Source of the DNA: Macrostomum lignano
Taxonomy: Eukaryota
Length of the DNA: 64,000 nucleotides
NCBI GenBank assembly: GCA_002269645.1
Contig: NIVC01000612.1
Coordinates: 124,001-188,000 of the forward strand
Direction: 5' to 3'
Part shown: positions 7,624 through 43,122 of the stretch, one piece after another
Layout: each line of letters opens with the position of its first letter
Numbering within the stretch: the stretch's first letter is position 1
Notes under the pieces: generated by a model
Seen by the model: the letters and a program-made list of their open reading frames with translations, nothing else
The model's database searches: none
What the model was told of the DNA's origin: nothing
Position numbers and translations under genes: made by a program

Positions 7624-10600
7624 TCAAGCCGAAGCCACCCGTTCATAGCAGTACAAATAGCCCATATGCTTCGGCGGCTCCTCAGACACACAAACTTTGT
7701 CGTCGTTAAATATGTACCAGACATTGTTGCGCCGCAGATGGCACACGTAGTGGCCGCTATGAGTGGACGCGCCCATATGGCTGATGAAGCCAAGTAGCCG
7801 ATAGCTCGGCGGGCCATCAGTCAGAGCCCCAGTGTCAGCGGCGGCAGCGGCAGCTGGCGGCGCCTCATCAGCTGGCGCATTCAATTCGTCCATATGGGAG
7901 AAAATCCAATCGACAGCCCGTTCGGGATTGTTGTCCGTCTGGCTCAGCGCTCTGCTGGCCTGCTCCTGGGTGAAGCCCATGGATACTATTGTTGCTAGGG
8001 CTTCCGGGTTCGGTTCGAAGCCGGCTGTCTTCTGCTTCTGCTGCTGTTGTTGCAGTTGCTGGGGCGGCAGATCGAAGTCCGCGTCCTGACTGTGGTCCAT
8101 GGCCCAGTTGAGGGCGGCTTCCAATCCGCCGCCTTTGGTTGCCAGGACAGCCCTGGTGGCGCCGTTCTCGCTGAAGCCCAGCTCGCGCACCTGGGCTACA
8201 AGGGACGGGTCCACCTGGAGGGTGTGAGGGGTAACGGGGTGCCGAAGGGATAAGTATAATATATAAATATAAATATTATATTTAGATAAATATAAAATAC
8301 ACGCTTGTATACAAGCCAATAAATCCAAAATCTGCACAGGTCTCAAATTCAGAGAGCTCTATTATCTAGATCCTAAAATCTTATAACATTCTAAATGCTT
8401 TAAACATTCCACAATCTAAATCTAAATCCCAAATAAAATCCCAATCTGGATCCCAAATAAAATCCCAATCTGGATCCCAAATAAAATCCCAATCTAGATC
8501 CCAAATAAAATCACTATCTGGATCACAAATAAATGCTAAACTGGATCCCAAAAAAAATCCCAATCTAGATCCCAAATAAAATCCTAATCTGGATCCCAGA
8601 TAAAATCCCAATTTGGATCCCAAATAAAATCTCAATCTGGATCTCAAATAAAATCCCAATCTGGATCCCAAATAAAATCCTAATCTGGATCCTATATAAA
8701 ATCTCAAACTGGATCTCAAATAAAATCCCAGATAAAATCCAATCTGGATCCCAGATAAAATCCCAATTTGGATCCCAAATAAAATCCCAATCTGGATCCT
8801 AAATAAAATCCCAATCTAGATCCTAAATAAAATCCCAATCTGGATCCCAAATAAAATCCCAATCCGGATCCCAAATAAAATCCCAATCTGGATCCTAAAT
8901 AAAATCCCAATCTAGATCCTAAATAAAATCCTAATATAGATCCTAAATAAAATCCCAATCTGGATCCCAGATAAAATCCCAATTTGGATCTCAAATAAAA
9001 TCCCAATCTGGATTCCAAATAAAATCCCAATCCGGATCCCAAATAAAATCCCAATCTGGATCCTAAATAAAATCCCAATCTAGATCCTAAATAAAATCCT
9101 AATCTGGATCCTAAATAAAATCCCAATCTAGATCCTAAATAAAATCCCAATCTGGATCCTAAATAAAATCCCAATCTAGATCCTAAATAAAATCCCAATC
9201 TAGATCCTAAATAAAATCCTAATATAGATCCTAAATAAAATCCTAATATAGATCCTAAATAAAATCCTATTATAGATCCTAAATAAAATCCCAATCTAGA
9301 TCCTAAATAAAATACTAATATAGATCCTAAATAAAATCCTAATATAGATCCCAAATAAAATCCCAATCTAGATTCTAAATAAAATCCCAATCTGGATCCC
9401 AAATAAAATCCCAATCTAGATTCTAAATAAAATCCCAATCTGGATCCTAAATAAAATCCCAATCTAGATCCCAAATGAAATCCCAATCTGGATCCTAAAT
9501 AAAATCCCAATCTGGATCCCAAATAAAATCCCAATCTGGATCCCAAATGAAATCCCAATCTGGATCCCAAATAAAATCTCAATCTAGATCCCAAATGAAA
9601 TCCCAATCTGGATCACAAATAAAATCCCAATCTGGATCACAAATAAAATCCCAATCTGGATCCCAAATAAAATCCCAATCTGGATCCCAAATAAAATCCC
9701 AATCTGGATCCCAAATAAAATCCCAATCTGGATCCCAAATGAAATCCCAATCTGGATCCCAAATAAAATCCCAATCTAGATCCCAAATGAAATCCCAATC
9801 TGGATCACAAATAAAATCCCAATCTGGATCACAAATAAAATCCCAATCTGGATCCCAAATAAAATCCCAATCTGGATTCTAAATCAAATCCCTAAAATCC
9901 CACAATCAAGATCCCTCAAATCCCTAAAATCTTACAATCCAGATCTTCAAAAATATGTGAAGTTTCTCAATTCTTAATCTAAATTCCCAAAATCCCTAAG
10001 CCGAAAATCCTCTCACCTGCTCAGCAGCAGATTTAGGCTGATCCGCAGGAAATTTGAGCTCGACTTCGCCCGGCTGCAAACCGCCGCAACCGCGCAAAAA
10101 TCCGATATCGATAAACTCCGGCACGTCTAATTCTACGTCCAATTTCTTCGGGCACCAATTATTATCGATGGTGAACTTCCTGGCGTGCAACAGCAGATAG
10201 TCGGTAAAGCTGGCCAAGCGACTCTGCTTACTAGCCGGTCCTTTAGCTTTAGTGGCTGGACTATAGAAATCTTCGATGCATTCAACAGCACCGAAGGCTT
10301 CTAGGCAGGCTTTGAGAGACACCCGAGGCGGCGGGGCGCCCGAATCTCCAGTGCCAGCTCCATCCAAGGGAATGGGGAATGACAGGGACAATTCCCGGCG
10401 ACTCTTGTAGGCCACCTGACCCGACTGGCCGCACTGAAGCCGGTCTTCGACATCGAAAGCGAACACTCGGCCGGGGTTGTCGGCCTGAGCCAGGCTGCTG
10501 CTTCGCTCCACCAGGGTGAGCAGGTGGAGAAAGAACTCGAAGGAGTCCTGCTGCCGGCTGGTTGAGAACTCCGGGTGGCCGCGACCCACCTGTCGAGGTT

Positions 10601-13129
10601 TGCGTGGGTCAGCTAGTGGGTCATTGATATGCGTCAGCTGGGTCAGCTAGTGGGTCATTGATATGCGTCAGCTGGGTCAGCTAGTGGGTCATTGATATGC
10701 GTCAGCTGGGTCAGCTAGTGGGTCATTGATATGCGTTAGGCTGGGTCAGCTAGTGGGTCATTGATATGCGTTAGGCTGGGTCAGCTAGTGGGTCATTGAT
10801 ATGCGTCAGCTGGGTCAGCTAGTGGGTCATTGATATGTCAGCTGGGTCAGCTAGTGAGTCATTGATGTCACAGCTGTGTCAACACCAAAACGAGTCAACT
10901 ATCCCTGACTCACCAGAGTCCTCAGCATCTGCGGCCGGATACCATAAGCTGGAGCCAGATCTCCCGGTTTCGGAGGCTGCTCAGGCTGCTGACCCTTAGC
11001 GGGTGCCGAGTACTTTCCAGACAGAAGTCCATCAGCCAGCTTAGCCAACTGAATATCCAGACTCGATACGGGATCGGACCTTTCCCTCTCCAATATGCCC
11101 GATCTACCATCGTAGTACCTTCGCACAAATGATGGCACAGCGAATAGCAGCTGCAGCACCGAGTTGATGTAGCAGGAGTTACCCAGATTGCGCAGACCGG
11201 TGAGACCCGGCCCACCAGCAGGCACCAGGGCTTTGCCAGTCTCCTGAATCGAATCCCACTCGCGCATGTTGGCTTCAATCTCCAACTCATTCATAGTTTT
11301 ATCAACTTTTCTCATAGCATTTAAATCGATACCAAAATGCTTGAGATGCTGCTCAAGCTTACTATCCAGCACCATATTATCCTCGGCATAAGAGTACACA
11401 TCGGCGCCTTGAGCACAGATGGTGCCCAGTTTAACAGCCAGAGGATAGCCAGTATTCTCATAGTGCTCAACAGCGTGGTTGTTGCCGCCGGAGCCGTCAA
11501 AGTAGCGCCGGCCGCACAGGATGGTGCCATCAGTCAGGTTTAGCCAGAGATTGTCGCGCTTATCACACTTGGCGCACTGCCAACCGCTGGGTGGGATTTT
11601 AATCCCATTGTCCAGCTGGACTAGGCTGGAAGCGTGCTTGGACTCTTGGCGAGTCTCGCCCTCCCACGTGTTGCTGGCCTGGAAGGGTAAAGTACATATT
11701 AACAACTTACTTTGTAGCTCAATATGCAACCTTGTACTTCTGGTCTGCTGAATATCCTGCTGAATTCTAAATTCAAAACTCAAAACTCGAAACAGCGGTC
11801 GAACTTTACATATTGCCGCAATACAAAGTGGGCTATCTAGGGAATATTAAGATCTATGGTTGTAGCCTAGTGGTTAGAGCATCAGACTCACGACTAAAAG
11901 GTCGGGGGTTCGATTCTCAATCAATCCACTCGGAAAAATTTGTGACTTTATTGAAGCCAGACACTTAACTCTCTGCATTGCTTCAGTTCACCCAGCTGTA
12001 AAATGGGTGCCAGCATTAGCTGGGGTAATTGAGGGTGAGGCGGCGTTTGACTTTAACTTATTTGAATGACTCGATGAACTTATGTGGATTTGAGCTGACT
12101 GACTTATTTTGCATCGCAACTTGTTTATTATATTTTCTGTTCTTACTTATTTTATTCCTCTACAAGTACATACTCATTTTCTCTAGTACACTCTGTCTAC
12201 CTGTGTGCGCCTTGCCCACCACCCCAAATATTGTCACCTTCCACCACTCTCTCCTGATCGCTATATAATATACAACTATCGCTCTTTGAAATAAAGAATT
12301 TATCTCGCCTCGTTCTAAAACTCACAGAATGAACTTTTCTTAGTCATTTGCGACACAACAGAGGGTGTGTTTAGCGACCCACGACTTCTGGGATTGAACA
12401 GCCAGCAAGCGCCAGCAAAAAAATGCCCACTTAAAAATTACAATTACAGACGTCCAACTAATTAGATGACGAGGTAATTAGCCCTAATAATTACAGTTGA
12501 AGTTACTCCTGCCGTTTACCTAAAACTACGGTAATTTTTGCTGTTTCCTTTATAAGATACGCCGCATTTTTGGTGTAATCAGTTATTATTATTGTGTTTA
12601 TAAAAGTACAGTATGCTCTTTCCACTCTTTCCAGATAAACTATTCTCACCTGAGCCAAAAGCTCCAAAGTGTGAGCCGATTGAGCAGCCAAAACTCCATC
12701 AATGCTTAATCTAATCCGTTCCGGCAAACAGTCATTTGGCAACGGCATAGCAACAGCTTCCGGCATCAGGTACAAAGAGTTGGATTCTTCAAACGAATAC
12801 TGAGACTCATTGCCAGCAAAGCCATCGGCTGTGCCAATAGCCAATCTAGTTGGTTTCTTAGCTGGCGGATCTTCAACAACATTCGCTGGCACCTCTTTCC
12901 ATCGACGAATGCGGCGATGCTGCAGGTACAGTCTATGGCCGAACCTGGAGTAATACAACGGCAAGAAGTCTAGACCGACGCCGTGAAACGATTTCAAACA
13001 GATGAATAAGCCGTTAGGGCTCTCGGGATTGTCGCACGAATAGAGGCATTCGTCTTTGTAGACCCGACTGTGCTCAGTTGGAATTGAGCAGTGGCTATCC
13101 GCTAGGCTTGCTAGGAGTTGAGCGTCCAT
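7624..13129 (-). CDS. USP5: Ubiquitin carboxyl-terminal hydrolase 5/13 (isopeptidase T), complete, ~802 aa; exons 13129-12650, 11678-10914, 10589-10017, 8214-7624
   Basis: Cryptic N-terminal ZnF 'VYKDECLYSCD..GLFICLKSFHGVG'; ZnF-UBP '[39 protein letters not shown]'; Cys box 'GLRNLGNSCYINSVLQ'; 'QQDSFEFFLHLL'; two UBA domains; His box 'SHMGASTHSGHYVCH'. All three introns are phase 0 GT-AG. Confidence 0.95.
8410..9880. repeat. 24-bp minisatellite (GGATCCCAAATAAAATCCCAATCT)n, USP5 intron 3
   Basis: About 60 tandem units; source of the GFYLGSRL-repeat ORFs. Confidence 0.97.
10607..10866. repeat. 34-bp minisatellite (CTGGGTCAGCTAGTGGGTCATTGATATGCGTCAG)n, USP5 intron 2
   Basis: About 7 tandem units. 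Confidence 0.95.
11857..12030 (+). mobile_element. tRNA-derived SINE with a CORE-like central domain, in USP5 intron 1
   Basis: A box TAGCCTAGTGG, B box GGTTCGATTCT, then 'GTGACTTT..GACACTTAACTCTCTG..CTTCAGTTCACCCAGCTGTAAAATGGG', resembling the CORE-SINE motif. Confidence 0.7.
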
Positions 13130-13289
13130 GGCTTAGGTTGAAGTTTTTAGTAAGCTCAGTTGCTTTGCGTTGGCTTAATATAGTAGTAAAATAAGCATGA
13201 AGATAAAGTGATTAAGTTTAAGTTGGTTTTAATTAAGGACATTTCCAATGATGAATAAACATTTTCGAATAGGAACTGGAAAATGCTTT

Positions 13290-13660
13290 TTACAGATGGA
13301 AACGGACATTTCCACAATGGAAACGGACATTTCCACGATGGAAACGGACATTTTCACAATGGAAACGGACATTTTCACAATGGAAAGCGGACATTTCCAC
13401 AATGAAAACGGACATTTTCACAATGGAAACGGACATTTCCACAATGGAAGCGAACATTTCCGCAATTGAAACAGACATTTCCACAATGGAAGCGAACATT
13501 TCCATAATGGAAGCGAACATTTCCGCAATTGAAACAGACATTTCCACAATGGAAACGAGCATTTCCACAATGGAAGCGAACATTTCCGCAATTGAAACAG
13601 ACATTTCCACAATGGAAAGCGGACATTTCCACAATGGAAACAGACATTTCCGCAGTCGAA
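13290..13660. repeat. 21-bp minisatellite (ACATTTCCACAATGGAAACGG)n upstream of USP5
   Basis: Tandem units; explains the METDIST-repeat ORFs. Confidence 0.95.
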
Positions 13661-14282
13661 ATTTTCAAAACTAAAACGACATTTTGAATTTCGGAAACCA
13701 GTTTTACTAACAACTGATTATGACAATTATTTATCCTAATTATTTAACTACATCAAAGCCTAATTACTCAGGATAAAAAGTTAAAATAGACGTTTAACAA
13801 AACAAAGCTTTGCTAGAACAGAAAGTGAAAAGCTATTTATTAAGCTCTTTAAATTCACTTTATTGCACTATTTACTTAAGCCTTATAAAGTTTAAAACAG
13901 TATAACAGTTCTGAACTTAGATGTAAGAAGATAAGTAAAAAAGTGCTTTAGAAAAGCTTGATAAAATAATATTATGAGTATAAAAAGAGATACAGAAAGG
14001 ATTACTTTTTCAAAATGAAAGTGATAAAATTTATCAAAAAAGTTTGGGCAATGTCTGCAGTGTAATATTGGAAATCAGTGCTACTTAGGCAAGAAGACTG
14101 CTAGATTAGTAAACGCTTAATATAACAGATAATAAAAATATAAAAGATATAAAGATTGTTTTTGAAATATTAATGTTATAAATAAAATCGCTCATAAAAA
14201 GTTATAATATTAGAAACTATATATAAGACTGACAAAAATTTACGATTTGCGCAATTTGGGTGGAGTCACGTGTCTTCTGAAC

Positions 14283-14480
14283 GGGCAGGCCGGTAAAGTG
14301 GGGTGGTGGGTCTTGCGTGTACATTAGGGGGCAGACCGGTAAGAGTGGGGTGGTGGGTCTTGCGTGTACATTAGGGGGCAGACCGGTAAGAGTGGGGTGG
14401 TGGGTCTTGCGTGTACATTAGGGGCAGGCCGGTAAGAGTGGGGTGGTGGGTCTTGCGTGTACATTGAGGGCAGGCTGGTT
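14283..14480. repeat. ~47-bp G-rich tandem repeat (GGCAGACCGGTAAGAGTGGGGTGGTGGGTCTTGCGTGTACATTAGGG)n
   Basis: About 4 units. Confidence 0.9.
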
Positions 14481-14694
14481 GGAATGGGGTGGTACATTAC
14501 TCGTAGGAGCAGGCTGCTGTTTTGTAATAATAAACTGGCAACCTCAAGATCACTCGGTTAAGATAGATAACACGACAAAGACGGTGAAAAAGCAGGTAGT
14601 AGTAAAAAACTTGAATAAGCATCGACTAGATGATGTTTTGATTGCTTTTATTAGGTTCCAAAAAGTAATCCATAAAAAAAGATCTACTTTTTAA

Positions 14695-15096
14695 TCAACC
14701 CTGATGCTGATCAGCCTGCAGCTCGGCAACAGATTTCTCCGACTTGTTCATTTTGGCCATATCGATACCAAAATGCTTGAGATGCTGCTCAAGCTTACTA
14801 TCCAGCACCATATTATCCTCGGCATAAGAGTACACATCGGCGCCTTGAGCACAGATGGTGCCCAGTTTAACAGCCAGAGGATAGCCAGTATTCTCATAGT
14901 GCTCAACAGCGTGGTTGTTTCCGCCTGAACCGTCAAAGTAGCGCCGGCCGCACAGGATGGTGCCATCAGTCAGGTTTAGCCAGAGGTTGTCACGCTTGTC
15001 ACACATGGCGCACTGCCAACCACTGGGTGGGATTTTAATCCCATTGTCCAGCTGGACTAGGCTGGAAGCGTGCTTGGACTCTTGGCGATCAGACAT
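14695..15096 (-). CDS. Stand-alone ZnF-UBP (ubiquitin-binding) ORF, 133 aa, partial paralog of USP5 exon 2
   Basis: Near-identical to USP5 11325-11650 with mostly synonymous changes. Own ATG, upstream polypyrimidine tract plus TTAG acceptor at 15121, TGA stop and AATAAA ~45 nt downstream (14652-14647). Confidence 0.65.
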
Positions 15097-15269
15097 GTTT
15101 TCCAGTATAGAATAAAGCAGCTAAGCAGAAAAACAATAAAGAAATAATAGATTAATTTTTTCATAAGATTTGATTTGCATATTTAATGGCCCTTTAATTG
15201 CCTCTGAGGGCCTGTCGAAACCCTCCCTGACGCTTTATCGGGTAGTGTCTCTACACCCTCCCCGATTCT

Positions 15270-15490
15270 ACAGGTGACTGCTCTATCCCCTCCCTGATGC
15301 TTCAGCTGGCACTGTCTCTACGCCCTCCCTGATGCTTCAGCTGGCACTGTCTCTATCCCCTCCCTGATGCTTCAGCTGGCACTGTCTCTATCCCCTCCCT
15401 GATGCTTCAGCTGGCACTGTCTCTATCCCCTCCCTGATGCTTCAGCTGGCACAGTCTCTACCCCCTCCCTGATGCTTCAGCTGGCACTGT
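15270..15490. repeat. 35-bp minisatellite (CCCTCCCTGATGCTTCAGCTGGCACTGTCTCTATC)n
   Basis: About 6 units. Confidence 0.92.
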
Positions 15491-16092
15491 TTTTACCATT
15501 GAATTGAGTAAAAGCAAACATTGTTGGTATAAAAATGAAAAGGAAAACACTGAAAAAGCTACATCAGATAAGTTGTAATTCTGAATACTCATTCTAGCAT
15601 TTATTTTTTCGTTTATTTCAGTCTGAAACGAGCAAGCAACTAAATTCAGGTCCAAGACTGACAGAACATTTAACAGGTTTGAAATCGCATTAAAATGATT
15701 GAAAAAATGCATGTTTGCCATAAAGACAGCATATCAATACGGCTACGTTTATGTTTCCTACTATAAAATATAAAATATTACACTAGTAATCAACCAGACA
15801 CCAATCTCTTTCAACAGCGACCCAATAAACTCTAATATCATTAACTGACTTTTTGATCTTATTAACTGACATGTAAATCTCAATCTCATTAACTAATCTC
15901 TCAATCTCACCTGTACGGTCCATCTCTAATTCTTACCTATGGAATCCATCTATCAATCTCACCTGCACAATCAGTCTAACAATCTCACCTGTAAAGTCTA
16001 ACTCTCAAAATCGCTCTCATTGAATTGAACTATTCTAAAAACCCAGTCAAAAAAGAGAGTACATGAAGTACCTACATACACTGGTAGCTTTA

Positions 16093-16662
16093 TTAAACAC
16101 TTAAATCGATTTTTCTCAACCATTTACACAGCAGCAGGCGGGCAGGCGACACCAGCGTAGCCTCGGGCCTGTGCAAGTTTCTGAAACTCAGCCAGACATA
16201 ATTGGCCCGATCAATCTGCCACAGCAGAGACCGATAGCCAATCAGCGGCAGGAAGCACAGGCGGGCATCAGCTGATAGGCAGCCAGTAGCTGCTGCTTTT
16301 TCCAGATCGGCACTCAGGCACTGGTGATGCGCCTCGGCAGATCCGACAATCTCCTTGATCAGATTGGCCAAGCTGTTGCCATGCTCATTCGGCTGCTCGG
16401 CGGTGGCTTTCGCGGCCGAGTGTAAGTTCTCCGGCGAGGCAATGCCGTGCCGTCGGAGTTCGGCTTCGGGTAGTTCGCAGCGACCACGGTTGATCATTAT
16501 GTTGGCTGAGGCTGACAGGAAGCGGATGAGACCGACCAGCCTGGATGAAGGAGTTGTGGGGCGGCGACAGAATGCAGGCAAAGACAGACACAGAAAAAAA
16601 ACACAAAGACAGACAGCCACAGACAGATAGATAGACAGACAGAGAGACACAGACAGACAGAC

Positions 16663-16694
<32 letters not shown>

Positions 16695-17176
16695 GCAGAC
16701 AGACAGACAGACAGACAGACAGACACACAGACACAGACAGACAGACAGATACAGACAAACATAACGAGCGTAAGACAGACACAGACAGATACAGACAAAC
16801 ATAACGAGCGTAGAATGCTGGTAGAGTCGCTCGCTTGGCGAGAAGAATAAATAGAAGCTTAATATCAACATCTGAATATGATTGCAATTTCTAACAACTT
16901 CAACGCGTTTCGCACGCCATGGTGCATCGTCAGGATTTTATTAGACCGACCCGAGAAACTGAGATTGAAAGCGATTGATTTCGTTCTGAAACAGACAGGA
17001 TTATCAATCGCTTTCAATCTCAATTTCTCAAATCGGTCTAATAAAATCCTGACGATGCACCATGGCGTGCGAAACGCGTTGAAGTTGTTAGAAATTGCAA
17101 TCATATTCAGATGTTGATATTAAGCTTTCTATAACGAGCGTAAGACAGACAGACAGACATACACAGACAGACATAC

Positions 17177-17213
<37 letters not shown>

Positions 17214-18025
17214 GCTGCTCTCACCTGCCAGCGTGACTAGCGGCCGAAAAGGCGGCCGGACAAGAGTCCTTAGTGACGCCGGCAGACAGCAGCATACAGT
17301 AATAAACAGGCGAGAATGCGGCCTCGCAGTAGCGATGCAGCTCAGCCAAGTCCGAGCAGATCCGGCCGCCAAGATACCGCTCCCTAGAGATGAGCAGCTT
17401 CTCTAAGTAATGCTTAGGCAGCTGATTACGGTGCACCACCTGTTCAAGCTCCCTAACAACCGGATATTCTCCAGGTAGGATAACAGGCCGATCAGCCTCA
17501 TCAGGACCAGCATAGATCAGATCTAAACAATCTCTCCAGTACTGCAGCCTCATCTGTGCCAGCTGTGCATCAGATGCAGCATCGCGAATCTGCGACAGTT
17601 CAATACTGTAGGCAGTCAGAGCCAGAGCGCACCGGCGCACTGCACTTGGCATTAGCAGTGCACAAGAATGAAAATGCGCATCGGTAGTGCGTACAATATT
17701 CGAACAGTATTCGCTAGGATTTTGATACTGACTATCTGTTGATGATTGTGTTGCTAGGCAACGAGTGGCTAGCCTAGCAACTGGAAGCCCAGTCGCTAGC
17801 AGACAGTATCTGGTAATAATAGCCTGAAATAATTTAAAGTTTTCAGGTGATGATTTGATTTTGAAAAAAATGTTTTATATTACTGTAAGTAGGACAGGCA
17901 TTAAAAAAATTATCTTTTACAGATGCTTAGAGAATTTGTTGCGCCAGCATGACAGTGTCAGCCACAATTTGGGGGCAGTAAACGAGTATATGTAATAAGC
18001 ATACCTTAAAAAAAGTTGCTTGCAT
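16093..18025 (-). CDS. NDUFAF6: NADH dehydrogenase complex I assembly factor 6 (squalene/phytoene synthase fold); exons 18025-18005 (predicted micro-exon), 17823-17225, 16540-16093
   Basis: '[84 protein letters not shown]|LVGL' follows the NDUFAF6 pattern. Phase-2 intron GTGAGA..CCAG keeps frame. Basic, hydroxylated N-terminus fits a mitochondrial presequence. Micro-exon is less certain. Confidence 0.85.
16585..16800. repeat. (GACA)n microsatellite in the NDUFAF6 intron (a second tract at 17143-17212)
   Basis: Direct reading. Confidence 0.95.
16852..17131. mobile_element. ~280-bp foldback/MITE-like palindrome
   Basis: Arms beginning AAGCTTAATATCAACATCTGAATATGATTGC are near-perfect reverse complements over ~120 bp, giving mirror ORFs on both strands. 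Confidence 0.8.
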
Positions 18026-18683
18026 GCTGCAACACACCTAAAAATTACCTTAGGTGTCTACTGTACTAGTATATTTTGAAAAAGGTACTGGTCTAACATA
18101 GCATATCTAAAATTTGTAGATATATATGTTTGCATCCACAGGTTTATCTAAAAGCTCCTTGTACATATCTGCACATTTTTGAAAAGCATAATCACAATAC
18201 ATACCTTTTCTACTTGATTTTGTCTTAAAATTCAGACTGTTAATGGTCAATAGGATATACACAATTCTTACAAGCATGCTTTTAAAAAGATTAGTTTCAA
18301 ACAAACAGATACTTAATATTTATATATACTAAAAGCTATCAAAATTAATTAACTAGGCCTCTCATAGCCTTAGCATATCTAGTAGAGTCTATACAAGTAC
18401 CATAATTGACTTGATACTCAAAAGTTGAGTAATCAACATTATTTTTTAATTTAAACTTGAGGAATCTCATACAATGTTGCTTTATACTAGAGTAGTTGAG
18501 TTGAGTCAAGTAGTTGATAAGATTTGAAATAGCTTATTTGATTATAACTTTTAAATGTAAACACTACTATATTCTAAGAAAAAGTAATTAAAAATTCTTA
18601 TTATGCTTGAAACAAAATGTTTTATTTATCAATATATTTTCACTATAGAAATCAGGTAAAGTGGCTTGCTTGATGAAGAGTAG

Positions 18684-18839
18684 ATAAATAAAGGTAAATA
18701 TCAACATGAAGTACCATTTGAGTTGCCGATGCATTTCGTCCATTTGCATTACGAAAACGATGACGATGTCCTAATGCAAATGGACGAAATGCATCGGCAA
18801 ATCAAACAACATTTCATGTTGATATTTACCTTTATTTAT
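18684..18839. mobile_element. ~155-bp MITE-like hairpin
   Basis: 27-bp perfect TIR ATAAATAAAGGTAAATATCAACATGAA plus inner IR GCCGATGCATTTCGTCCATTTGCATT. Confidence 0.75.
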
Positions 18840-19223
18840 TTTCACTATAATATAAGGGGTCTTTAATATACTTGATACAAAATCATCATATATTGAGGTT
18901 GCTCAGTTGCAACTATTTTGAAAATGATGGTACAAAATATATTATTATGTAGAAAGCTTAATCTTATCTGCATTTGTAAATGTTTAATTTCTATGTATAT
19001 TTAAAAGTTGATATAGGGGGCCTTGCTTTATAGGTTAAGACACAAAAAAGGAATTATGATTAGCTTTATGAATAGTTAATTTGGTAATATCTGTGTTGAT
19101 AACAGGTTACTTTAGAAGTTCAGTGCTAAATGTATATAGACTCAGAGAACATTCAATGCCAATTATTTTAAAGTTTTTGTTTTTTAAAGGTAATTAAAAC
19201 ATATATGAAATTAGGAATTCTGT

Positions 19224-19750
19224 TTGTTTCGCCCTTAAACCATTTTGGCCATGGACGTTTCACCCCTAGAAACTTTTGGCCCATAGTCTGTTTTGCCCAT
19301 AAACCAGTGTGGCTATAGTACATATTTTAACCAAAATGGTGATTATTTAATTAAGAGATATAGCCATATATATATGTATTTAATTTTGTCTTTTTTTATG
19401 CTAATTTTTAGTTTTAATGTCTAACAAAATATGAATTGTTGCTATAACATGAGTTATTATAATTGTGAATTATTACAAATTTTATTCTAAGAAAATCTCC
19501 TTTCAAAGTGTGATAAGCCTCTTTAATTAGAGGATGAGAAAGGGTTATGGTAAAACCAGAAACACTAAAAGAATAGATTTGTCAACTTTTTCCAAGTTAG
19601 GCATTCTTTGCCACCTTGGCCAAACTGGTTCAATTGGCTTAGAGTAAAAATGATCAATAGTCAAAATAGTCTATGGGCAAAATTGTCTATAGGCAAAATG
19701 GTCTGGGGGCAAAATATCAATGCTAAAATAGTTTATAGGTGAAATAACTA
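19224..19750. mobile_element. Degenerate element with inverted arrays of ~19-bp subterminal repeats
   Basis: Left TTCGCCCTTAAACC/TTTGCCCATAAACC units oppose right CTATGGGCAAAA/TTTATAGGTGAAA units; no clear TSD. Confidence 0.4.
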
Positions 19751-19889
19751 GCTACCAATTTGGACTACTTACCAAATTGAAGAGGACAACACAAATATTT
19801 TATTGCATGTATATTATATAAAATTATAATTTGAATTCTAATTACAAATATATACATCAATTAGGCTGCATATGCACACACAGGTGGAT

Positions 19890-19973
19890 GGACAGATAGA
19901 CAGACAGACAGGCAGACAGACAGACAAGCAGACACACAGACAGACTGATAGACAGAGAGACAGATAGACAAAC

Positions 19974-20028
<55 letters not shown>

Positions 20029-20090
20029 TAGACAGGCAGATACACAGACAGACACACAGACAGATAGACAGACAGACACACACACACATT
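19890..20090. repeat. (GACA)n microsatellite
   Basis: Direct reading. Confidence 0.95.
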
Positions 20091-21550
20091 ATGCATAAAG
20101 TAAAACAATAGGCCTAAAATCAAATAATAGCTAAGTTAATAAATTAATAATAACAAATAGAAATAAAAGCAAACAGTTAATCTAGAAAATAAATACAGAA
20201 TAGAAAAGTTAAAGAATTATCAAGACTCAAAATTAAACATCATCTTAAAAATGGTAAAAATTGTAAAATATTATAAAAATATTATAAAAAATATTACAAT
20301 AAAATTTGTAAATAATAGACACTCAATGACTAATGTTTTATAAAATATACATTTGGCCAAAAATACCCTATTACCAATTGGAAATATCTGAATATCTAAT
20401 CTCTTGAAGTAACATTGACATCAATAAGAAATGTATAGTCATTACTAACCATGGCTTCTTTTAGAGACATATTTCATTACAAAGTGGTTACTCTCCTATC
20501 TGCCCCTTATGTGATTAAGAGAAGGAAATATTGATTATTATTTTTTATGACATAACCAGAGAATGTTATTTTCTAGTTGAGTTGACAATCATTTTATTTG
20601 TTGCTAGTTTGTCTGGCACTCTTTTGTCTACCAAAATATGATGCAATCATTTTGTCAACAAAATATTAAATACAATGTCAGTCTAAAAGAAATATCTAGA
20701 TTGTATATCTTAAAAATATTCAAAACTAAAAATAAGGAACTCATTTTTAAAGTATGAGTATAGTTATACATACTATTTTAAGACTCACCAAATGTTGACT
20801 TGACATATAGGTCTACTTAAGTATATAATTTGAAGTTAAGTTTATATAAACTTTGCAACAGGATAGCAAATATTTTATTATCATTGGATTGGGATAGGGC
20901 CAGGAATCATAAAAATGCTTATAATCATATTTAACTACAAACTACTTTATCTTCTAATTCACTAACAACTAACTGTCACAAAACTTTTTTTCAACAAATG
21001 TTTATATTAAATATATTTTTTGAAATATTGCATTGAACAATATTATGCATGAAAAAAAGATATCCCTGATCCCATGACTCTTTACATAACTTGCTAGATA
21101 AACTCACCATTCTAGATTGCATCCATAACCTACATTTGTGATTTTTTAGGGCTCTAGATTAGAGGTCGGATGGGATTGAAATCTTTGGGCGAGATCGGGA
21201 TCGGGAATAATTTTTTTCTTGGGATCAGGATTGGGATCGGGATTCAGGAATTGGGATCAGGTCTTTTAGTGTATTGTCCATGTAAAGTTAAACAAAATTG
21301 AGAAAAGATTATCCAGATCAAGAAGTAAAACACAACGAAATTGATATGTGTAGTGTACGCTCTGTGCGGTAATAATGTACTTGGCTTGGTCGATGAACTA
21401 ACTCGTAGCAATACTCTTATTACGCAATGCTCTCGTGCCTATAAATACAGTATATTGAATTGAGCAATCGGCTCATTTAAGTGCATCGTTTCTCTCGCCA
21501 AACTAAATAGCTAGTCTGAGTCATTACATGGCGTCGCAAGCAAACTCTCA

Positions 21551-22384
21551 GTGAGGCCAACCCCCCGCGCACTGATAACGACCGGTGATTCAGCAAATAT
21601 GGCACAGGCCCTGCAACTCGCGGCACCAGACGCCTTTGACCTCGAAGGCGATCCTCTGACAAGAGCTCAGCGATGGAAAACCTGGACGCGAAGGTTCAAC
21701 AGCTACATACACGCAGCTGGCATCACAGATGCGACACAGCAGCTGGAGCTCTTAGTTTACACTGCGGGCGAGAAGCTGGAAGACTTCATGGACGATAACG
21801 GCGTCAAGAAAGGAGAGTCTGCGGAGGAGCTCATCAAAGAGTTGCAGGGTATCTTCGACCAAAAGAACAGCGTTGTCTTCCTCAGGTATCAGTTTGAAAT
21901 ATGCCGGCAGGAGGAAGGAGAGTCAATTGAGGCCTGGTATCATCGGCTACGCAAGGCTGCGGACCAATGCACATTCGGCGAACTCCGAGACTCGCTCATC
22001 AGGGACAAGATCGTGGCTCATTACCGGTCCGAGAGGATCAGGAGGGAACTCCTGCAGCTCAACGATGTCTCCTTAGACGACGTTTTGAAGCGAATCCGAG
22101 CGAGGGAGGCAGCGGAGCAGCAGGCCCAGGCCATGGAGATCGGCGCCGCAGCCGACACGGGCCATCCTTCCGCTTCGAATGTGGCGGCGCTGCGTCCACC
22201 TCGTAACCGACCATCCCATACAACCAGGCCGGCTGCCGCGGCAAGAGACAGCGGCATCAACTGCGATCGCTGCGGGCGACCAGGACATCAGACGTGCGAG
22301 GCAGCCCGTAACAAGGCGTGTCGACGCTGCGGCAAGATGGGTCATTTCGCTTGGGCGTGTCGAGAGCAGCTAAAGTCCCTCTGA
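21551..22384 (+). CDS. Gypsy gag with two zinc knuckles
   Basis: 'CDRCGRPGHQTC..CRRCGKMGHFAWAC'. Apparently once fused to pol; an extra GA near 22362 breaks the frame. Confidence 0.88.
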   Translation: MRPTPRALITTGDSANMAQALQLAAPDAFDLEGDPLTRAQRWKTWTRRFNSYIHAAGITDATQQLELLVYTAGEKLEDFMDDNGVKKGESAEELIKELQGIFDQKNSVVFLRYQFEICRQEEGESIEAWYHRLRKAADQCTFGELRDSLIRDKIVAHYRSERIRRELLQLNDVSLDDVLKRIRAREAAEQQAQAMEIGAAADTGHPSASNVAALRPPRNRPSHTTRPAAAARDSGINCDRCGRPGHQTCEAARNKACRRCGKMGHFAWACREQLKSL

Positions 22385-25300
22385 GGACCGTTGACGAACC
22401 GCAGGAGGAGGCTCCGCCGGGTCGAGTCGAATATCTGCAAGACGACCCCGTCGAGCACGAGCTATTCACCCTGAGGAACTGCGGCTCAGCTTGGACGCCT
22501 GCGACAATTAATGGGCTCAAGACAAAGGTGCTCATCGACAGCGGCGCGGCCTGCAACATCATCGACAGGGCGGCCTACGACAGGATGCCGCAAAAAGCCG
22601 CGCTGCAGCCCGCCAGCGACAAGGTCTACCCATACGGAAGCCAAGAGCCGCTGAGATTGCTGGGCAAGGCAGACCTGCAAGTCAGCGTGTTCGAGATCCA
22701 CGAGACACTACCGTTCTTGGTGCTCGACGGTGAGGGCGCTTGCATCATTGGCCGGAGAAGCGCTGAAAGACTTCAGATTCTGCGAGTCGGCCCGGAGAAC
22801 AAGGTGGCATACCAGCTGCGTCCGTCTCCCGAGGTCTCGCTAGACAGCATGCTAACAGGGATCCCAAAGGACGTCCTACATGCGCCGGGGGCACCGGCCC
22901 TGCACGAACTCCTAACGGAGAACGCACTAGTCTTCAGCGGAATCGGCAGGCTCAAAAACTATGCCGCCCGCATCTTCCTGGAGGAGGGAGCCAGGCCGGT
23001 CTGTCATCCCCATCAAGGGTGCCAATACATCTCGCACAGGCAGTCGACGCCGAGCTGCAGTGCCTCGAGGACCAAGGCATCATCGAGCCGGTGGAAGGCC
23101 CCTGTCCGTGGGTAGCCCGCATCGTCGTCGTGCCCAAGCAGACTCCAGGCGAGATCAGGATTACGCAGGACTTGAGAGACCTGAACAAGTCGGTCGTTAG
23201 AGAGCGGCATCCCATCCCGACATTCGAGGAGGTGACGGGAGACATGGCAGGAGCGCAGCTATTCTCAGAGCTCGACATCGCGAAGGCATTTTATCAAATC
23301 CCAGTCGCCGACGAATGCCGCCATCTTCTGACTTTTTCGACACCACGAGGCCTGCGGCGGCTGACACGGCTCTGTATGGGACTGTCTACGGCCCAGGAAA
23401 TTCTCCAGGCGGTCATGTCATCCGTGCTAGCTGGACTCCCGAAAGTAAAATGGATTCACGACGACATCATCGTGTATGGGCACAGCGTGGCGGAGCACCA
23501 CAGCAACCTGCAGGCATGTCTGCGACGACTGGCACAGCACGGGCTGACGCTGAATCCGTTAAAATGCAAGCTCGCCCATACCGAGGTCACGTTTATGGGG
23601 ATGCAGCTGTCCAGTGAAGGTGTCAGACCAACCCAGTCCAAGTTGGAAGCCATCCATGCATTTGCCGAGCCAAAGACTGCCACAGAGGTGCGCTCGTTCC
23701 TAGGCCTGGTCAACTATCTGGCCTCATTCACCCCCGGCTGGCGGATGTAGCGAGGCCACTGCGCAATCTGACTAGGAAAGGCGAGCCCTGGGCATGGACC
23801 GACCTCGAGAAACGAGCTTTTGACGACGTGAAGACCCGGATTGCGACCAGCGGCACCCTCGCCTTCTTCAACCACCGCCTAGCGACGCAACTCATCGTCG
23901 ACGCCGGCCCAGCGGGCCTGGGCGCGATCCTAACGCAGACGCAAGCGGACGGCACCAACCGGCCTGTCGCGTACGCCAGCCGGACGCTATCCGATGTTGA
24001 GCAGCGCTACTCCCAGACTGAGAAGGAGGCGCTGGCCGTCAAATACGGCTGCTTGAAATTTCAGTACTATCTGCACGGCGCTCCGACATTTACGGTGGTG
24101 ACAGACCACAAGCCGCTCATCGCATTGTTCAGCAGTGGCTCAAGGCCTCCCCGAGGATCGAAAGAATGGCGCTGCGCATTCAGCACATGAAATTTACAGT
24201 CGAATATCAGCCTGGCCCACTTAACCCAGCGGACGTGCTGAGCCAGCAGCCGCTGCCAACACGAGGAAGAAATGTCGGCGAAGAGCTCGACACCCTCTGC
24301 ATCGCTGCAATCGTCCAGGCGGCCATACCGAACGCGCTGTCGCTGTCCTCAGTGCAAGAGAGTTCGCTGCAAGATGCAACAATTCAAGCCGCTATTCGAT
24401 CGCTGGAGACAGGACGATGGAGCCTCGAGTCGGCGGAGATGCGATCGCTCCACGCCCTACGGAATGAGCTATCGGCAGCGGACGGCGTGCTCCTGCGGGG
24501 CCAGAGAATCGTAGTTCCAATGGCGCTTCGGCGCCTGGTTTTGGACCTGGCACACCGCGGTCATCAGTGCCTGCGCAAGACGGTTGACCGTTTGAGCACC
24601 AAAGTCTGGTGGCCAAGGGTGCAGGAGCTCTTCGTGCGTGCCTGCCGAGCCTGTGCAGCTACGTCGCACGCGGCCGACGTGACCGCCGCGCCGCTGAAGC
24701 CGACGCCGATCCCGAAAGCTGCATGGCTAACACTAGGGGCAGACCTGCTAGGCCCCATTCAAGGCAGCATGCTGCTCGTCTGCGTTGACCACTACTCGCG
24801 CTTCCCTGAAGTCGAGATCGTCCAGACCACAACGGCCGAAGCGCTGATTCCCAAGCTGAGGAATTCGTTCGCCAGATTCGGCATCCCACAGGTACTGGTC
24901 ACCGATAACGGCCCGCCATTCTCCTCGGCCCAGTTCAAAGGCTTTCTGGACAGCCACGGAATCCGGCAGCGTCTCATCACACCGCTGCATCCGCAGGCCA
25001 ACGGCATCACTGAGCGCCTGAACCGCTCCATCAATAAGGTTGTACGAGCTGCCATTGCCCAGAAGCGCGACTGGAGGGCGGCCCTTGACGAGTGGCTGCT
25101 GGCCTACCGTTGCACGCCGCAGCGAACCACCAACCGGGCACCAGCCGAGCTGCTCTTGGGTCGCGTCCCAAACGATGCCATCCCGTCAATCAGGCCGTCG
25201 AGACCGGTGGCCATCGCAGACAGGAGGCTCCGACAGCAGGACGCCAGCAGCAAGGCAAAGGGCAAGCGCTACACGGACAAGCGACGGCAGGCGAGACCGC

Positions 25301-25614
25301 ATGGGCTCAAAGTCGGCGACACGGTGCTCCGGTGCCGACTAAATCCGCTCAAGGGCGAGGCTCCATTCGAGTGGACACCCTGGCTGGTCGAGAGTGTCAA
25401 GGGCGACTCGATGACCATTCGGCAGGGCGCCAGAGTTTGCAGGCGGCACTGCACTGACCTGAAGCGGGTAGCACCAGATGCAGAGCCTGATTTTCCTGTT
25501 GGGGAGACCGCACCGCCGATCTTGCAAGCTGCGGGGAGCGAACCCGCGACCCCTCCAATTGCGCTGCGACCACACCCCCGAGAGGCCAAGGTGAAAGTGA
25601 ACTATAGGGTTTAA
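22318..25614 (+). pseudogene. Gypsy pol (protease, RT, RNase H, integrase) broken by several small indels
   Basis: PR 'VLIDSGAACNII'; RT 'SELDIAKAFYQI', 'WIHDDIIV'; RH 'LIVDAG', 'YSQTEKEALAV'; IN 'GADLLGP', 'LVTDNGPPF', 'NGITERLNR'. Spread over four frames. Confidence 0.9.
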
Positions 25615-42630: not shown

Positions 42631-43122
42631 GCGACCCGCTGTTGCGCTGCCTGACGCATCCCTGCCACATGCTGCTGTTTCTGCTGCGCTACTTCGGCCG
42701 GGCCAAGGCGCAGCCGGAAGATCTGCGCAGGGCCTGCCTCAATGAGTCAACGACGGCCCGGTTGCTTGAGCAGGCGTCGCTCGCGCTGAGCCCCGGTCTC
42801 TGGCGCGGTTCTCGAGCGGAGCGAGTTGCGACGGCTGAAGCAGATCCCGAGCTCAGGTGCGAGTCTTAGAGCTAGTGCTTTGACCTGGCTTTTTTGGCTT
42901 GGTTTTAATTTCTTCTGCGGCTCGTTGATTTGATTTTACACGCTTGTCTCCGTCCTCCCTCTTTCTGTTGGTGTTGGGGTTCGTTTCCCCTTTCTGGGCC
43001 GCGTTTGCCGGTCTTTTGTGCCACTTGCTTTTCTCTGCGTTAGTTTTTTGGGGTTTAATATGTATATGTTTCAGCGCGAGAATATATTTCGGTCTACTCC
43101 GAGGCATAGATCTTATATACTA

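Follow-up and report, generated by a model that had tools for sequence, protein, structure and literature searches.

A small ZnF-UBP-only gene next to USP5 in Macrostomum lignano, intact at both duplicated loci and partly overwritten by gene conversion

Why should an open reading frame that encodes little more than a ZnF-UBP domain lie beside a complete USP5 gene? This question is raised by the window analysed here (the whole stretch of 64,000 nucleotides from contig NIVC01000612.1 of the Macrostomum lignano assembly GCA_002269645.1). According to the list of open reading frames and the sequence itself, this mini-gene is an intact ORF of 133 codons followed by TGA, on the minus strand (15096..14695; ATG at 15096-15094, TGA at 14697-14695). 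The coding sequence (14695..15096) specifies a product of 133 aa, composed of a ZnF-UBP domain (residues ~4-118) and a C-terminal tail of 15-21 residues. The annotation of GCA_002269645.1 includes it as a gene, with a PF02148 match, on this same contig; its annotation cluster is Mlig023582, and GenBank already lists the product as a 'hypothetical protein'.

A preliminary description of the locus had placed the ORF upstream of USP5 and had regarded it as a stand-alone gene, and both statements were borne out. A tblastn lead combined with a splice model defined the USP5 gene (BOX15_Mlig008614g2; 7624..13129, minus strand), whose four coding exons (13129-12650, 11678-10914, 10589-10017 and 8214-7624) encode a product of 802 aa, 100% identical to PAA79868.1 in GenBank. 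The mini-gene lies 1,565 nt (1.57 kb) upstream of the USP5 ATG (13129) on the same strand, outside USP5 and not in an intron, and the exon that it matches is exon 2. A duplicated exon within intron 1 of USP5 was considered and ruled out, since exon 1 (13129-12650) is located downstream of the mini-gene ORF. The RNA-derived GenBank annotation likewise keeps the mini-gene separate at both of the duplicated loci described below. The neighbouring USP5 protein contains PF17807, PF02148, PF00443 and UBA domains, whereas the mini-gene product contains PF02148 only: the USP catalytic domain with its Cys and His boxes, the N-terminal cryptic UBP domain and the two UBA domains of the USP5/IsoT architecture are absent from it, the stop codon is placed 21 codons past the ZnF-UBP domain, and no USP5-like coding sequence was found 3' of this stop or 5' of codon 4. 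An Rfam scan of positions 11000-17000 and a tRNA scan gave no significant match.

A second copy of the mini-gene (copy B; Mlig023582g1, PAA83292.1) was identified on contig NIVC01000424.1, 2.1 kb upstream of USP5 copy g1. It carries two replacements (R4L and Q84P), and the two USP5/mini-gene loci are collinear at 73-100% identity. A small, separate ZnF-UBP-only gene is thus kept intact at two duplicated loci of M. lignano, a species described as a recent hidden polyploid (PMC10468722). The presence of the mini-gene at the same position in both loci indicates that the gene is older than the recent genome duplication of the species.

A polyploid, repeat-rich genome that is hard to assemble could yield a chimeric or collapsed contig, in which a stray copy of exon 2 is placed upstream of USP5, and minisatellites do flank the mini-gene ORF (TRF detected a 46-bp repeat between the mini-gene and USP5, 14283..14493, and a 35-bp repeat upstream of the mini-gene, 15221..15490). 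We consider an assembly artefact extremely improbable, however: the same arrangement occurs on two contigs with diverged flanks, both mini-gene variants also adjoin USP5 in UniRef protein models derived from an earlier assembly, and a mis-joined exon 2 could not have created a private start, a private tail and fixed differences.

The same protein models bear on another explanation, namely that the ORF is an exon of a longer gene, either a 3' exon of the upstream gene (squalene/phytoene-synthase family) or an alternative 5' exon of USP5, which would add a second ZnF-UBP domain. One ab initio model (UniRef A0A1I8GJS3, 1232 aa) fuses the upstream gene, a micro-exon, the mini-gene and USP5, and another (UniRef A0A1I8GVD1, 670 aa) fuses the mini-gene and USP5. 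Moreover, a pyrimidine tract with an AG, recognisable in the sequence as a candidate 3' splice or SL trans-splice acceptor (15121..15150, minus strand), precedes the ORF. The AG, at which the ORF would be spliced in as a 3' exon of the upstream gene, ends at 15121, 24 nt 5' of the ATG. Relative to the ORF it is in phase 0, so that the position and frame given in the preliminary description are confirmed. This AG is conserved at both loci (here it closes an in-frame TAG, at the other locus a CAG), with 21/24 identity from AG to ATG, and together with the pyrimidine tract it is a partial match only to the reported M. lignano motif [T/C]TNCAG.

Nevertheless, membership in a longer gene appears improbable. 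At locus B the RNA-derived GenBank annotation does not merge the three genes, and in the window the mini-gene and USP5, at least, are also distinct. The upstream gene stops at its own stop codon, which overlaps an AATAAA, and the 'micro-exon' corresponds to a single repeat of a 26-bp minisatellite (4 copies here, ~25 at the other locus) that contains CAG/GTGAGA by chance. These consensus donors, 0.8 kb upstream, had also been considered as the end of a leader exon, and were rejected because they are minisatellite units whose copy numbers are very different between the loci. A join to USP5 would need the donor G/GTTGAT, which resembles neither the GTGAG donor found in each of the three USP5 introns nor the species' GT[G/A]AG motif, and it would have to skip both the mini-gene stop codon and the AATAAA behind it. 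Finally, the annotated 5' end of copy B is situated ~12-14 nt upstream of the ATG and not at the AG.

RNA-seq and de novo transcripts were the source of the GenBank gene models for this assembly, and peaks of SL and poly(A) reads were used to cut the gene ends (PMC5730564); transcription of the mini-gene is shown only indirectly, through this transcriptome-derived origin. The gene identifiers Mlig023582 and Mlig008614 did not occur in the full texts and supplements of the M. lignano papers that were searched. Neither mini-gene has an annotated 5' end at the AG. In the window, the annotation labels the copy as a complete ORF; judging from the way in which ORF callers mark partial ORFs, its transcript model seems to extend beyond the AG in the upstream direction. 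The SL of M. lignano ends in ATG, and such an ATG would be in frame with the mini-gene ORF. An alignment of the two loci revealed an invariant island of 21 nt, CCATTAAATATGCAAATCAAA (15169..15189, minus strand), which is TATA-like and includes the octamer ATGCAAAT; the 5' flank around it is poorly conserved, and the island may serve as a promoter element. At the opposite end, the stop codon is followed 42 nt later by AATAAA (14652..14647, minus strand), in agreement with the stop and nearby AATAAA reported previously. This poly(A) signal is not positionally conserved: the other locus is devoid of AATAAA there, and has one within ~10 nt of its stop.

The spacing of the genes is also of interest. 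One criterion for M. lignano operons asks that genes on the same strand be separated by less than 1 kb once repeats are subtracted, and that the downstream gene be SL-spliced (PMC8629364). The distance from the stop of the upstream gene (16093) to the AG (15121) is ~970 nt, or ~560 nt without TRF repeats, and that from the mini-gene poly(A) region (~14630) to the USP5 ATG (13129) is ~1500 nt, or ~900 nt without them, so that after subtraction the spacing is below 1 kb on both sides of the mini-gene. Polycistronic precursors make up ~7% of the assembled M. lignano transcripts (PMC5730564). The 5' end of the mini-gene mRNA may be produced either by an own promoter or by SL trans-splicing within an operon-like unit.

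A blastn comparison aligned positions 15088..14761 of the mini-gene with 11652..11325 in USP5 exon 2, without gaps and with 97.6% identity over 328 bp; within the window, the mini-gene region had no match besides this block. The homogenised block (14761..15088, minus strand) and its partner, the ZnF-UBP-coding part of exon 2 (11325..11652, minus strand), differ at 8 positions of the 328 bp, as shown by blastn and a four-way codon alignment, and the block includes 82% of the mini-gene ORF. In the codon alignment with the adjacent exon 2, seven of these differences are synonymous and one is a replacement (K>M at codon 31). The preliminary description had listed about eight synonymous changes and this replacement; the replacement stands, and the synonymous count has to be corrected to seven. 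The long identical stretch mentioned there was found as a run of 159 bp (14919..14761), which is only mildly unusual given 8 differences (P = 0.04).

The comparison of four sequences (both mini-genes and both USP5 copies) was more informative. If a difference is termed fixed when it separates both mini-genes from both USP5 copies, then all six fixed differences (five synonymous, plus K>M at 15005) fall into an older segment (14920..15005, minus strand), i.e. they are clustered within 86 of 327 bp (P = 0.005). This segment is bordered by the latest conversion tract (14761..14919, minus strand), identical to the same-locus USP5 exon 2 and containing the locus-specific N/K site 14890, and by a second tract without any fixed difference (15006..15087, minus strand), which contains the locus-specific synonymous site 15028. 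At sites 15028 and 14890 the mini-gene agrees with USP5 inside each locus, and the loci differ from each other (P = 2e-4). Variants which are common to the mini-gene and the neighbouring USP5, and yet specific to one locus, indicate that conversion took place after the loci had split.

At codon 113, just after FGID (which ends at codon 112), the identity of mini-gene and USP5 DNA drops sharply from 97.6% to ~39%. Tracts that differ in history and meet at sharp boundaries, as found here, are characteristic of interlocus gene conversion, and the mosaic origin proposed earlier is upheld by both the clustering and the locus-concordant variants. These data support the conclusion that the core of the mini-gene has been repeatedly overwritten from USP5. 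Sharp tract ends, clustered fixed differences and sharing within a locus are features common to the mini-gene and other partial duplicates subject to this process. Most of the latter are pseudogenes, whereas the mini-gene has a complete ORF with limits that match a structural domain, is present at two loci and exhibits a dN/dS of 0.13.

Beyond the block there is an unconverted tail of 21 codons (14698..14760, minus strand), whose homology to the USP5 linker between the ZnF-UBP and catalytic domains is detectable at the protein level only. Tail DNA is ~39% identical to USP5 and cannot be aligned (dS saturated, dN 0.8). The encoded peptide, which aligns to residues 283-302 of human USP5, has 5/21 residues in common with M. 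lignano USP5 and is identical at 9/21 positions, in a fixed register, to the consensus of 110 animal USP5s. An abrupt divergence of the DNA with protein homology kept had been described before, and we found the same; both tail strings quoted at that time are exact. The tail retains consensus residues that are missing from M. lignano USP5. The idea that it is, as a whole, nearer to the animal consensus than the corresponding part of M. lignano USP5 turned out to be wrong (9/21 versus 12/21). Between the two loci the tail is 95.5% identical, compared with 73-87% for the adjoining flanks. The saturation of its synonymous sites relative to USP5, the consensus residues retained in the tail and the fact that the gene predates the split of the two loci support the view that this is an old paralog.

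The two mini-genes differ by eight synonymous and four non-synonymous changes (Sd = 8, Nd = 4; dN/dS = 0.13, P = 0.001 against neutrality, with only 12 differences). Their alignment has no gap in 402 nt, as against 13 gap columns per 135 nt of the 3' flank and 20 per 100 nt of the 5' flank. Changes private to the mini-gene lineages are mostly synonymous (3 non-synonymous versus 7 synonymous, P = 0.0014), which indicates that the ORF itself is under purifying selection. Neither a broken frame nor a neutral pattern, the marks of a pseudogene, was observed in this small sample, whose core is under conversion: the ORF is intact and indel-free at two loci. Purifying selection, as originally claimed, is thus supported by the low dN/dS and by the lack of indels between flanks that are full of them. 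Two circumstances temper this result. Since the donor of conversion, USP5, is itself constrained, the apparent conservation of the mini-gene core is inflated, and since identity between the loci is patchy (some non-coding blocks reach 95-100%), the contrast of ORF and flanks is weaker evidence than it appears.

The mini-gene might accordingly be a transcribed but functionless relic, whose frame survives only through conversion repair from USP5 and which is transcribed by accident, as could result from read-through or operon-type transcription in a compact cluster of same-strand genes. Conversion clearly operates at the two loci, and the convertible block covers most of the ORF; the replacements in copy B, the predicted disorder of the tail, the lack of a known orthologue outside the species and the frequency of polycistronic precursors point in the same direction. 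A relic accounts poorly, however, for the ATG, the first three codons, the 21-codon tail and the stop, which lie beyond the protection offered by conversion and are nonetheless intact and indel-free at both loci, next to flanks with ~3 indels per 100 nt. The excess of synonymous changes among the private ones is equally difficult to reconcile with it, as is the ratio of five synonymous fixed differences to one replacement, the more so as the replacing M is seen in USP5 of other species. We regard a relic as unlikely, though far from negligible. The evolutionary reading of a stand-alone, old, converted and constrained mini-gene is supported.

What might such a protein do? The product aligns without gaps to residues 174-302 of human USP5 (72% identity; human numbering = mini + 170) and to PDB 3IHP/2G43 (E = 1e-60, again without gaps). 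The zinc ligands C29, C32, C49 and H62 (human C199, C202, C219 and H232) are retained, as are the predicted pocket residues N37, W39, R51, Y53, Y89 and Y91, all identical to human N207, W209, R221, Y223, Y259 and Y261. The USP5 pocket residues for the free C-terminus of ubiquitin have been named previously (10.1101/676668), and so have the key Arg and aromatic residues of the ZnF-UBP pocket (PMC13493902). In an alignment of 50 sequences the zinc-ligand positions are invariant, and the whole set of zinc and pocket positions is invariant or nearly so. The replacement K>M is located between the first two zinc-binding cysteines, and M at this position is also present in USP5 of other species.

An AF2 model of the product (pLDDT 87.9, pTM 0.79) gave, as best Foldseek matches, crystal structures of the isolated USP5 ZnF-UBP domain (2G43/6DXT; target-normalised TM 0.96-0.97, rmsd 0.8 Å, 77% identity). 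Residues 119-133 were modelled with low confidence (pLDDT < 50), and these last 15 residues are predicted to be disordered. The earlier proposal of a ubiquitin binder free of a catalytic domain therefore holds as a prediction, since no zinc ligand or pocket residue has been lost and the model agrees in fold with the solved isolated domain. We infer that the mini-gene is translated, that its product binds ubiquitin and that it could trap free ubiquitin C-termini in trans; the sensing, sequestering or antagonising roles put forward in the preliminary description are likewise putative, and the product may be a natural free-ubiquitin "sponge".

The closest known counterpart is the isolated USP5 ZnF-UBP domain (BUZ, PF02148; PDB 2G43, 2G45, 6DXH). 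Residues 4-121 of the mini-gene product align to residues 12-129 of 2G43, and the likeness comprises a near-equal span, 72-77% identity to human, no gaps and a 0.8 Å superposition of the predicted fold. The structural constructs were made in the laboratory, whereas the mini-gene domain is encoded by its own gene, and carries K>M as well as a private, probably flexible tail of ~15 residues. Other members of the same domain family (HDAC6, BRAP2 and USP3/13/16/20/22/33/39/44/45/49/51) have the domain inside multi-domain proteins; HDAC6 and several USPs likewise read free ubiquitin C-termini. The mini-gene product is clearly of the USP5 type (E = 1e-60 to USP5, versus 1e-6 to USP49 and 6e-4 to HDAC6).

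In vitro, USP16, USP15 and USP21 became more active when a ZnF-UBP 'sequester domain' was supplied in trans, through its uptake of the ubiquitin product (PMC13493902, Alexandrovics et al. 2026); the catalytic domain of USP5 was not among the enzymes stimulated (PMC13493902). This work is a concrete biochemical precedent for a possible action of the mini-gene product in trans. The common feature is a free ZnF-UBP able to capture ubiquitin with a free C-terminus, which for the mini-gene product is predicted. The sequester domain (PMC13493902) is an engineered high-affinity variant of that of USP16, whereas the mini-gene is a natural sequence.

Searches of a large protein database were performed with the mini-gene product, full USP5 and exon 2, and returned proteins seemingly within ~1.75 times the query length. 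The best matches outside M. lignano (75%, 50% and 63% identical, respectively) were all ordinary USP5 exons or genes, and no mini-gene orthologue from another species was found in this database, which seemingly contains no Macrostomum congener; given this absence of congeners, the lack of an orthologue is uninformative. Short ZnF-UBP-only matches (130-175 aa) were considered as stand-alone genes and rejected, being USP5 exons read into introns and ending just after 'M.KV'. A limited, non-exhaustive literature search yielded no described single-domain ZnF-UBP gene or protein.

Taken together, we favour, with a probability of roughly 0.55, a genuine small gene of M. lignano: a partial duplicate of USP5, converted and constrained, with a putative ubiquitin-buffering product. 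It would have originated as a DNA-level duplicate of ~0.4 kb from inside USP5 exon 2, which acquired a private ATG, three codons ahead of the homologous part, and a stop 21 codons past the domain. The core would then have been overwritten by conversion from the neighbouring exon 2 in tracts of different ages, while the start, K>M, the cluster of synonymous differences and the tail remained mini-specific. The product spans almost the very segment of USP5 that is expressed in structural work as an autonomously folded, ubiquitin-binding ZnF-UBP. As a soluble protein of ~15 kDa it might cap the free Gly-Gly C-terminus of mono-ubiquitin and unanchored chains in trans, by which free ubiquitin would be buffered, and USP5 might face competition from it for unanchored chains. 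Alternatively, it may be a product sink that relieves the inhibition of USP enzymes by their product, ubiquitin.

More tentative, and to our mind still rather doubtful, is the stronger form of this reading: a dedicated, separately expressed ZnF-UBP-only protein which acts as a trans-acting trap for free ubiquitin C-termini, is coupled to USP5 by position and conversion, and tunes free ubiquitin and unanchored chains or relieves product inhibition of deubiquitinases. If this were true, conversion would let the binding pocket of the mini-gene product track that of USP5, the ubiquitin pool would be tuned in this way in a highly regenerative animal, and this would be the first single-domain ZnF-UBP gene to be described, with the engineered 'sequester domain' as its artificial counterpart.

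To our knowledge, ZnF-UBP domains are known only as modules of larger enzymes, in which their roles are still being worked out. The case presented here is lineage-restricted, and it is from sequence that we infer a functional role. The locus illustrates, in compact and textbook form, how a domain-sized gene is born from a partial duplicate and then evolves in concert with its parent, and the availability of RNAi and transgenesis makes M. lignano a tractable model. If a natural ZnF-UBP-only gene is maintained by selection at two loci, this would point to the ability of cells to employ a trans-acting binder of ubiquitin tails.

Compared with the whole window by blastn, the intact minus-strand mini-gene (133 codons; ATG at 15096, TGA at 14697-14695) has one further copy: 15088..14761 and 11652..11325 are 97.6% identical over 328 bp without gaps. 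A human USP5 query was used in tblastn as a lead only, followed by explicit splice-site modelling. The resulting minus-strand USP5 (exons 13129-12650, 11678-10914, 10589-10017 and 8214-7624; 802 aa) matches GenBank PAA79868.1 ('hypothetical protein BOX15_Mlig008614g2', Macrostomum lignano) at 100% identity. This four-exon model places the mini-gene outside any intron, on the same strand as USP5 and 1,565 nt upstream of its start codon, with exon 2 as its partner, which corroborates the arrangement proposed in the preliminary description. The AATAAA noted nearby lies 42 nt past the mini-gene stop.

An exact-sequence look-up identified the 133-aa product as a called gene on NIVC01000612.1 (GCA_002269645.1), directly upstream of USP5. 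Another member of its 90% cluster, PAA83292.1 ('BOX15_Mlig023582g1, partial'), is a second copy encoded on NIVC01000424.1 (stretch L002), 2.1 kb upstream of a second USP5 copy, Mlig008614g1. These two loci, A (the window) and B, are collinear over more than 20 kb, at 73% to 100% identity. M. lignano became a "hidden polyploid" recently (PMC10468722) and both loci carry the mini-gene, which is therefore most simply read as older than the genome duplication.

The GenBank annotation of GCA_002269645.1 is not ab initio: it was built from StringTie/TACO RNA-seq assemblies and a de novo transcriptome; genes were trimmed at spliced-leader and poly(A) read peaks, and non-coding and repeat-overlapping models were dropped (PMC5730564). 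The calls at both loci are therefore indirect evidence that the mini-gene is transcribed as a separate mRNA. Ab initio UniRef models from an earlier assembly instead fuse the upstream gene, the mini-gene and USP5 (1232 aa), or the last two (670 aa). Their joins rely on a non-consensus donor, G/GTTGAT (the M. lignano motif is GT[G/A]AG, and all three USP5 introns have GTGAG), and on one unit of a 26-bp minisatellite, (TACAGGTGAGATTGATAGATTGATTG)n, taken as a micro-exon. Each unit of this minisatellite (about 4 copies at 15896-15993; about 25 at locus B, L002 8460-9100) holds a perfect 5' splice-site consensus, CAG/GTGAGA. The RNA-based model of the upstream gene at locus B ends at its own stop, which is overlapped by an AATAAA. 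In the window this gene, of the squalene/phytoene-synthase family (3' end at 16093-16887; UniRef name 'Phytoene synthase'), lies on the same minus strand as the mini-gene and USP5, again with an AATAAA overlapping its stop; we take it to be probably the NDUFAF6 orthologue.

The predicted product consists solely of a USP5-type ZnF-UBP domain. Its only Pfam domain is zf-UBP, and blastn, tblastn and Pfam showed no catalytic, cryptic-UBP or UBA sequence in the mini-gene, in agreement with the suggestion that it lacks a catalytic domain. Human USP5 174-302 aligns to residues 4-132 without gaps at 72% identity; residues 4-121 likewise match the 129-residue isolated ZnF-UBP construct (2G43/2G45, crystallised both free and with ubiquitin). 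The zinc ligands (C29, C32, C49 and H62) are present, and the pocket residues N37, W39, R51, Y53, Y89 and Y91 are all identical to human N207, W209, R221, Y223, Y259 and Y261 (USP5 pocket residues are named in 10.1101/676668, the key Arg and aromatics in PMC13493902); these positions are invariant or nearly so among 50 homologues. The AlphaFold2 model has a pLDDT of 88, with only residues 119-133 below 50, and in Foldseek it is closest to crystal structures of the isolated USP5 ZnF-UBP (TM 0.96-0.97, rmsd 0.8 Å), with USP13, USP49 and HDAC6 ranking lower. The domain clearly belongs to the USP5-type family, and the gene clearly does not encode a USP5 enzyme. To our knowledge, the ZnF-UBP proteins described so far (12 USPs, HDAC6 and BRAP2) are all multi-domain, and a limited literature search found no single-domain one.

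The history of the gene was examined by comparing mini A, mini B and exon 2 of USP5-A and USP5-B (the copies at each locus) site by site over 327 alignable bases. Six sites set both mini-genes apart from both USP5 copies (five synonymous and one K>M replacement), and all lie within 86 bp (15005-14920; P = 0.005 for such clustering). No fixed difference occurs on either side of this segment, including a run of 159 bp identical within locus A, the long identical stretch noticed earlier. Of the differences originally counted against exon 2, the K>M replacement stood, while the synonymous changes numbered 7 rather than about 8; other organisms' USP5 proteins can also have Met at this position (CNMCD, CSMCD). 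At 15028 (synonymous) and 14890 (Asn/Lys) each mini-gene matches its neighbouring USP5, with states that differ between loci; a chance match in position, base and phase has P ~2e-4. Judged from these sequences, this is the signature left by conversion between a mini-gene and its adjacent USP5 once the loci had separated. The USP5 position equivalent to mini-gene residue 69 is the site that co-varies in this way, and three distinct M. lignano USP5 database variants (P0121, P0242 and P0244) carry Asn, Lys or Arg there.

Similarity to USP5 collapses at codon 113. Over the last 21 codons (the tail, 14698..14760) synonymous divergence is saturated and dN is ~0.8, and the tail lines up, gap-free, with residues 283-302 of the human linker. 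In fixed register 9 of its 21 residues equal the consensus of 110 animal USP5s, among them A2, D17 and Q20, which are changed in M. lignano USP5 itself; the two tail peptides quoted in the preliminary description were correct. Together with the tract pattern, these features show an old paralogue whose core, the block alignable with exon 2, was homogenised with USP5 more than once, in line with the earlier proposal of a partial paralogue partly re-homogenised by gene conversion. An earlier event spanned the whole block, the 86-bp segment of which has a synonymous divergence of roughly 0.25; later ones took in the two outer tracts.

Purifying selection, also proposed earlier, is supported by the comparison of loci, in small counts throughout. 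Between mini A and mini B there are 12 differences over 402 positions and no indels (8 synonymous and 4 non-synonymous by Nei-Gojobori; dN/dS = 0.13, P = 0.001 against neutrality), similar to USP5-A versus USP5-B in the same region (dN/dS 0.11). Changes private to the mini-gene lineages, which cannot come from USP5, number 3 non-synonymous and 7 synonymous (P = 0.0014), and at both loci the parts beyond the reach of conversion have stayed intact. Identity between loci is 95.5% in the tail, against 87% (13 gap columns) in the first 135 nt past the stop and 73% (20 gap columns) in the 100 nt before the acceptor-like AG. This flank contrast alone is not decisive, because identity is patchy: a ~470-bp non-coding block in the spacer that separates the upstream gene from the mini-gene (15530-16006; L002 about 9100-9560) is 95-100% identical, far more than the immediate flanks (73-87%). 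Neither a long ORF of a known family nor an Rfam match was found in it; a regulatory region, an unannotated transcript or recent exchange between the loci could each account for it.

The acceptor-like site described earlier is present: a pyrimidine tract and an AG ending 24 nt 5' of the ATG, in phase 0. It could be a spliced-leader acceptor within an operon-like unit. The AG is conserved (TAG in the window, CAG at locus B), and identity between loci steps up from 73% to 88% exactly there. The 35-nt leader, trans-spliced to ~30% of M. lignano genes and ending in ATG (PMC8629364), would add 9 residues in frame if joined at this AG; that leader AUGs can create ORFs is a recognised problem (PMC9851317). 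Under the published limit on distance (<1 kb once repeats are subtracted), such a unit could comprise the upstream gene, the mini-gene and USP5. However, agreement with the reported acceptor motif is only partial, the annotated 5' end at locus B lies 12-14 nt upstream of the ATG, and the annotation treats the window copy as a complete ORF, so its transcript model seems to continue upstream beyond the in-frame TAG that this AG creates. An island of 21 nt, CCATTAAATATGCAAATCAAA (15169-15189, minus strand, ~75 nt upstream of the ATG), is unchanged between loci amid otherwise diverged sequence, and its TATA-like element and octamer ATGCAAAT could form a promoter element. The 200 nt upstream of the USP5 ATG (13130-13330; L002 12320-12523) are 98% identical, which is consistent with a control region of its own. 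They extend into a 21-bp minisatellite (13296-13651) that is likewise conserved, and an AG lies 2 nt before that ATG (CCTAAG/CCATGG). The coding conclusion for the mini-gene is unaffected by these observations.

Several other features were recorded in the window. A tRNA-like, SINE-like sequence in USP5 intron 1 (11858-12010, plus strand) contains no tRNA according to ARAGORN, and its sole Rfam match is far below threshold. Ty3/gypsy-like ORFs (21551-25614, plus strand; gag with zinc knuckle, protease, RT and integrase, split across frames) are surrounded by 7.4 kb (17134-24547) with 97.3% identity to the other locus, implying that either the insertion is older than the locus split or it was homogenised later. 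A second retroelement-like ORF set (39897-42869, plus strand; reverse-transcriptase motif YLDD) is flanked by GC-rich low-complexity repeats. Two very long minus-strand ORFs of up to 942 aa (34131-38419 and 60719-63115) consist of near-identical tandem ankyrin-like repeats of ~72 aa, each paired with an antisense ORF of similar periodicity.

The ZnF-UBP of USP5 reads the unmodified C-terminus of the proximal ubiquitin, which confers specificity for unanchored chains (reviewed in PMC7659471). A free copy would be expected to bind mono-ubiquitin and unanchored chains without cleaving them. It might plausibly compete with USP5 and other readers of the free C-terminus, so that chains are protected or sequestered. 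Alternatively, it might act as a product sink: an engineered ZnF-UBP supplied in trans removed inhibitory free ubiquitin and so made USP16, USP15 and USP21 more active, whereas the USP5 catalytic domain was not stimulated (PMC13493902). Which outcome prevailed would depend on the affinity and abundance of the mini-gene protein. A physiologically meaningful role as a trans-acting ubiquitin-tail binder is a tentative reading, to which we assign a probability of about 0.3. GenBank and UniRef already list the protein, unnamed and hypothetical; what is new here is its interpretation as a domain-sized partial paralogue, under selection and evolving in concert with its parent, USP5.
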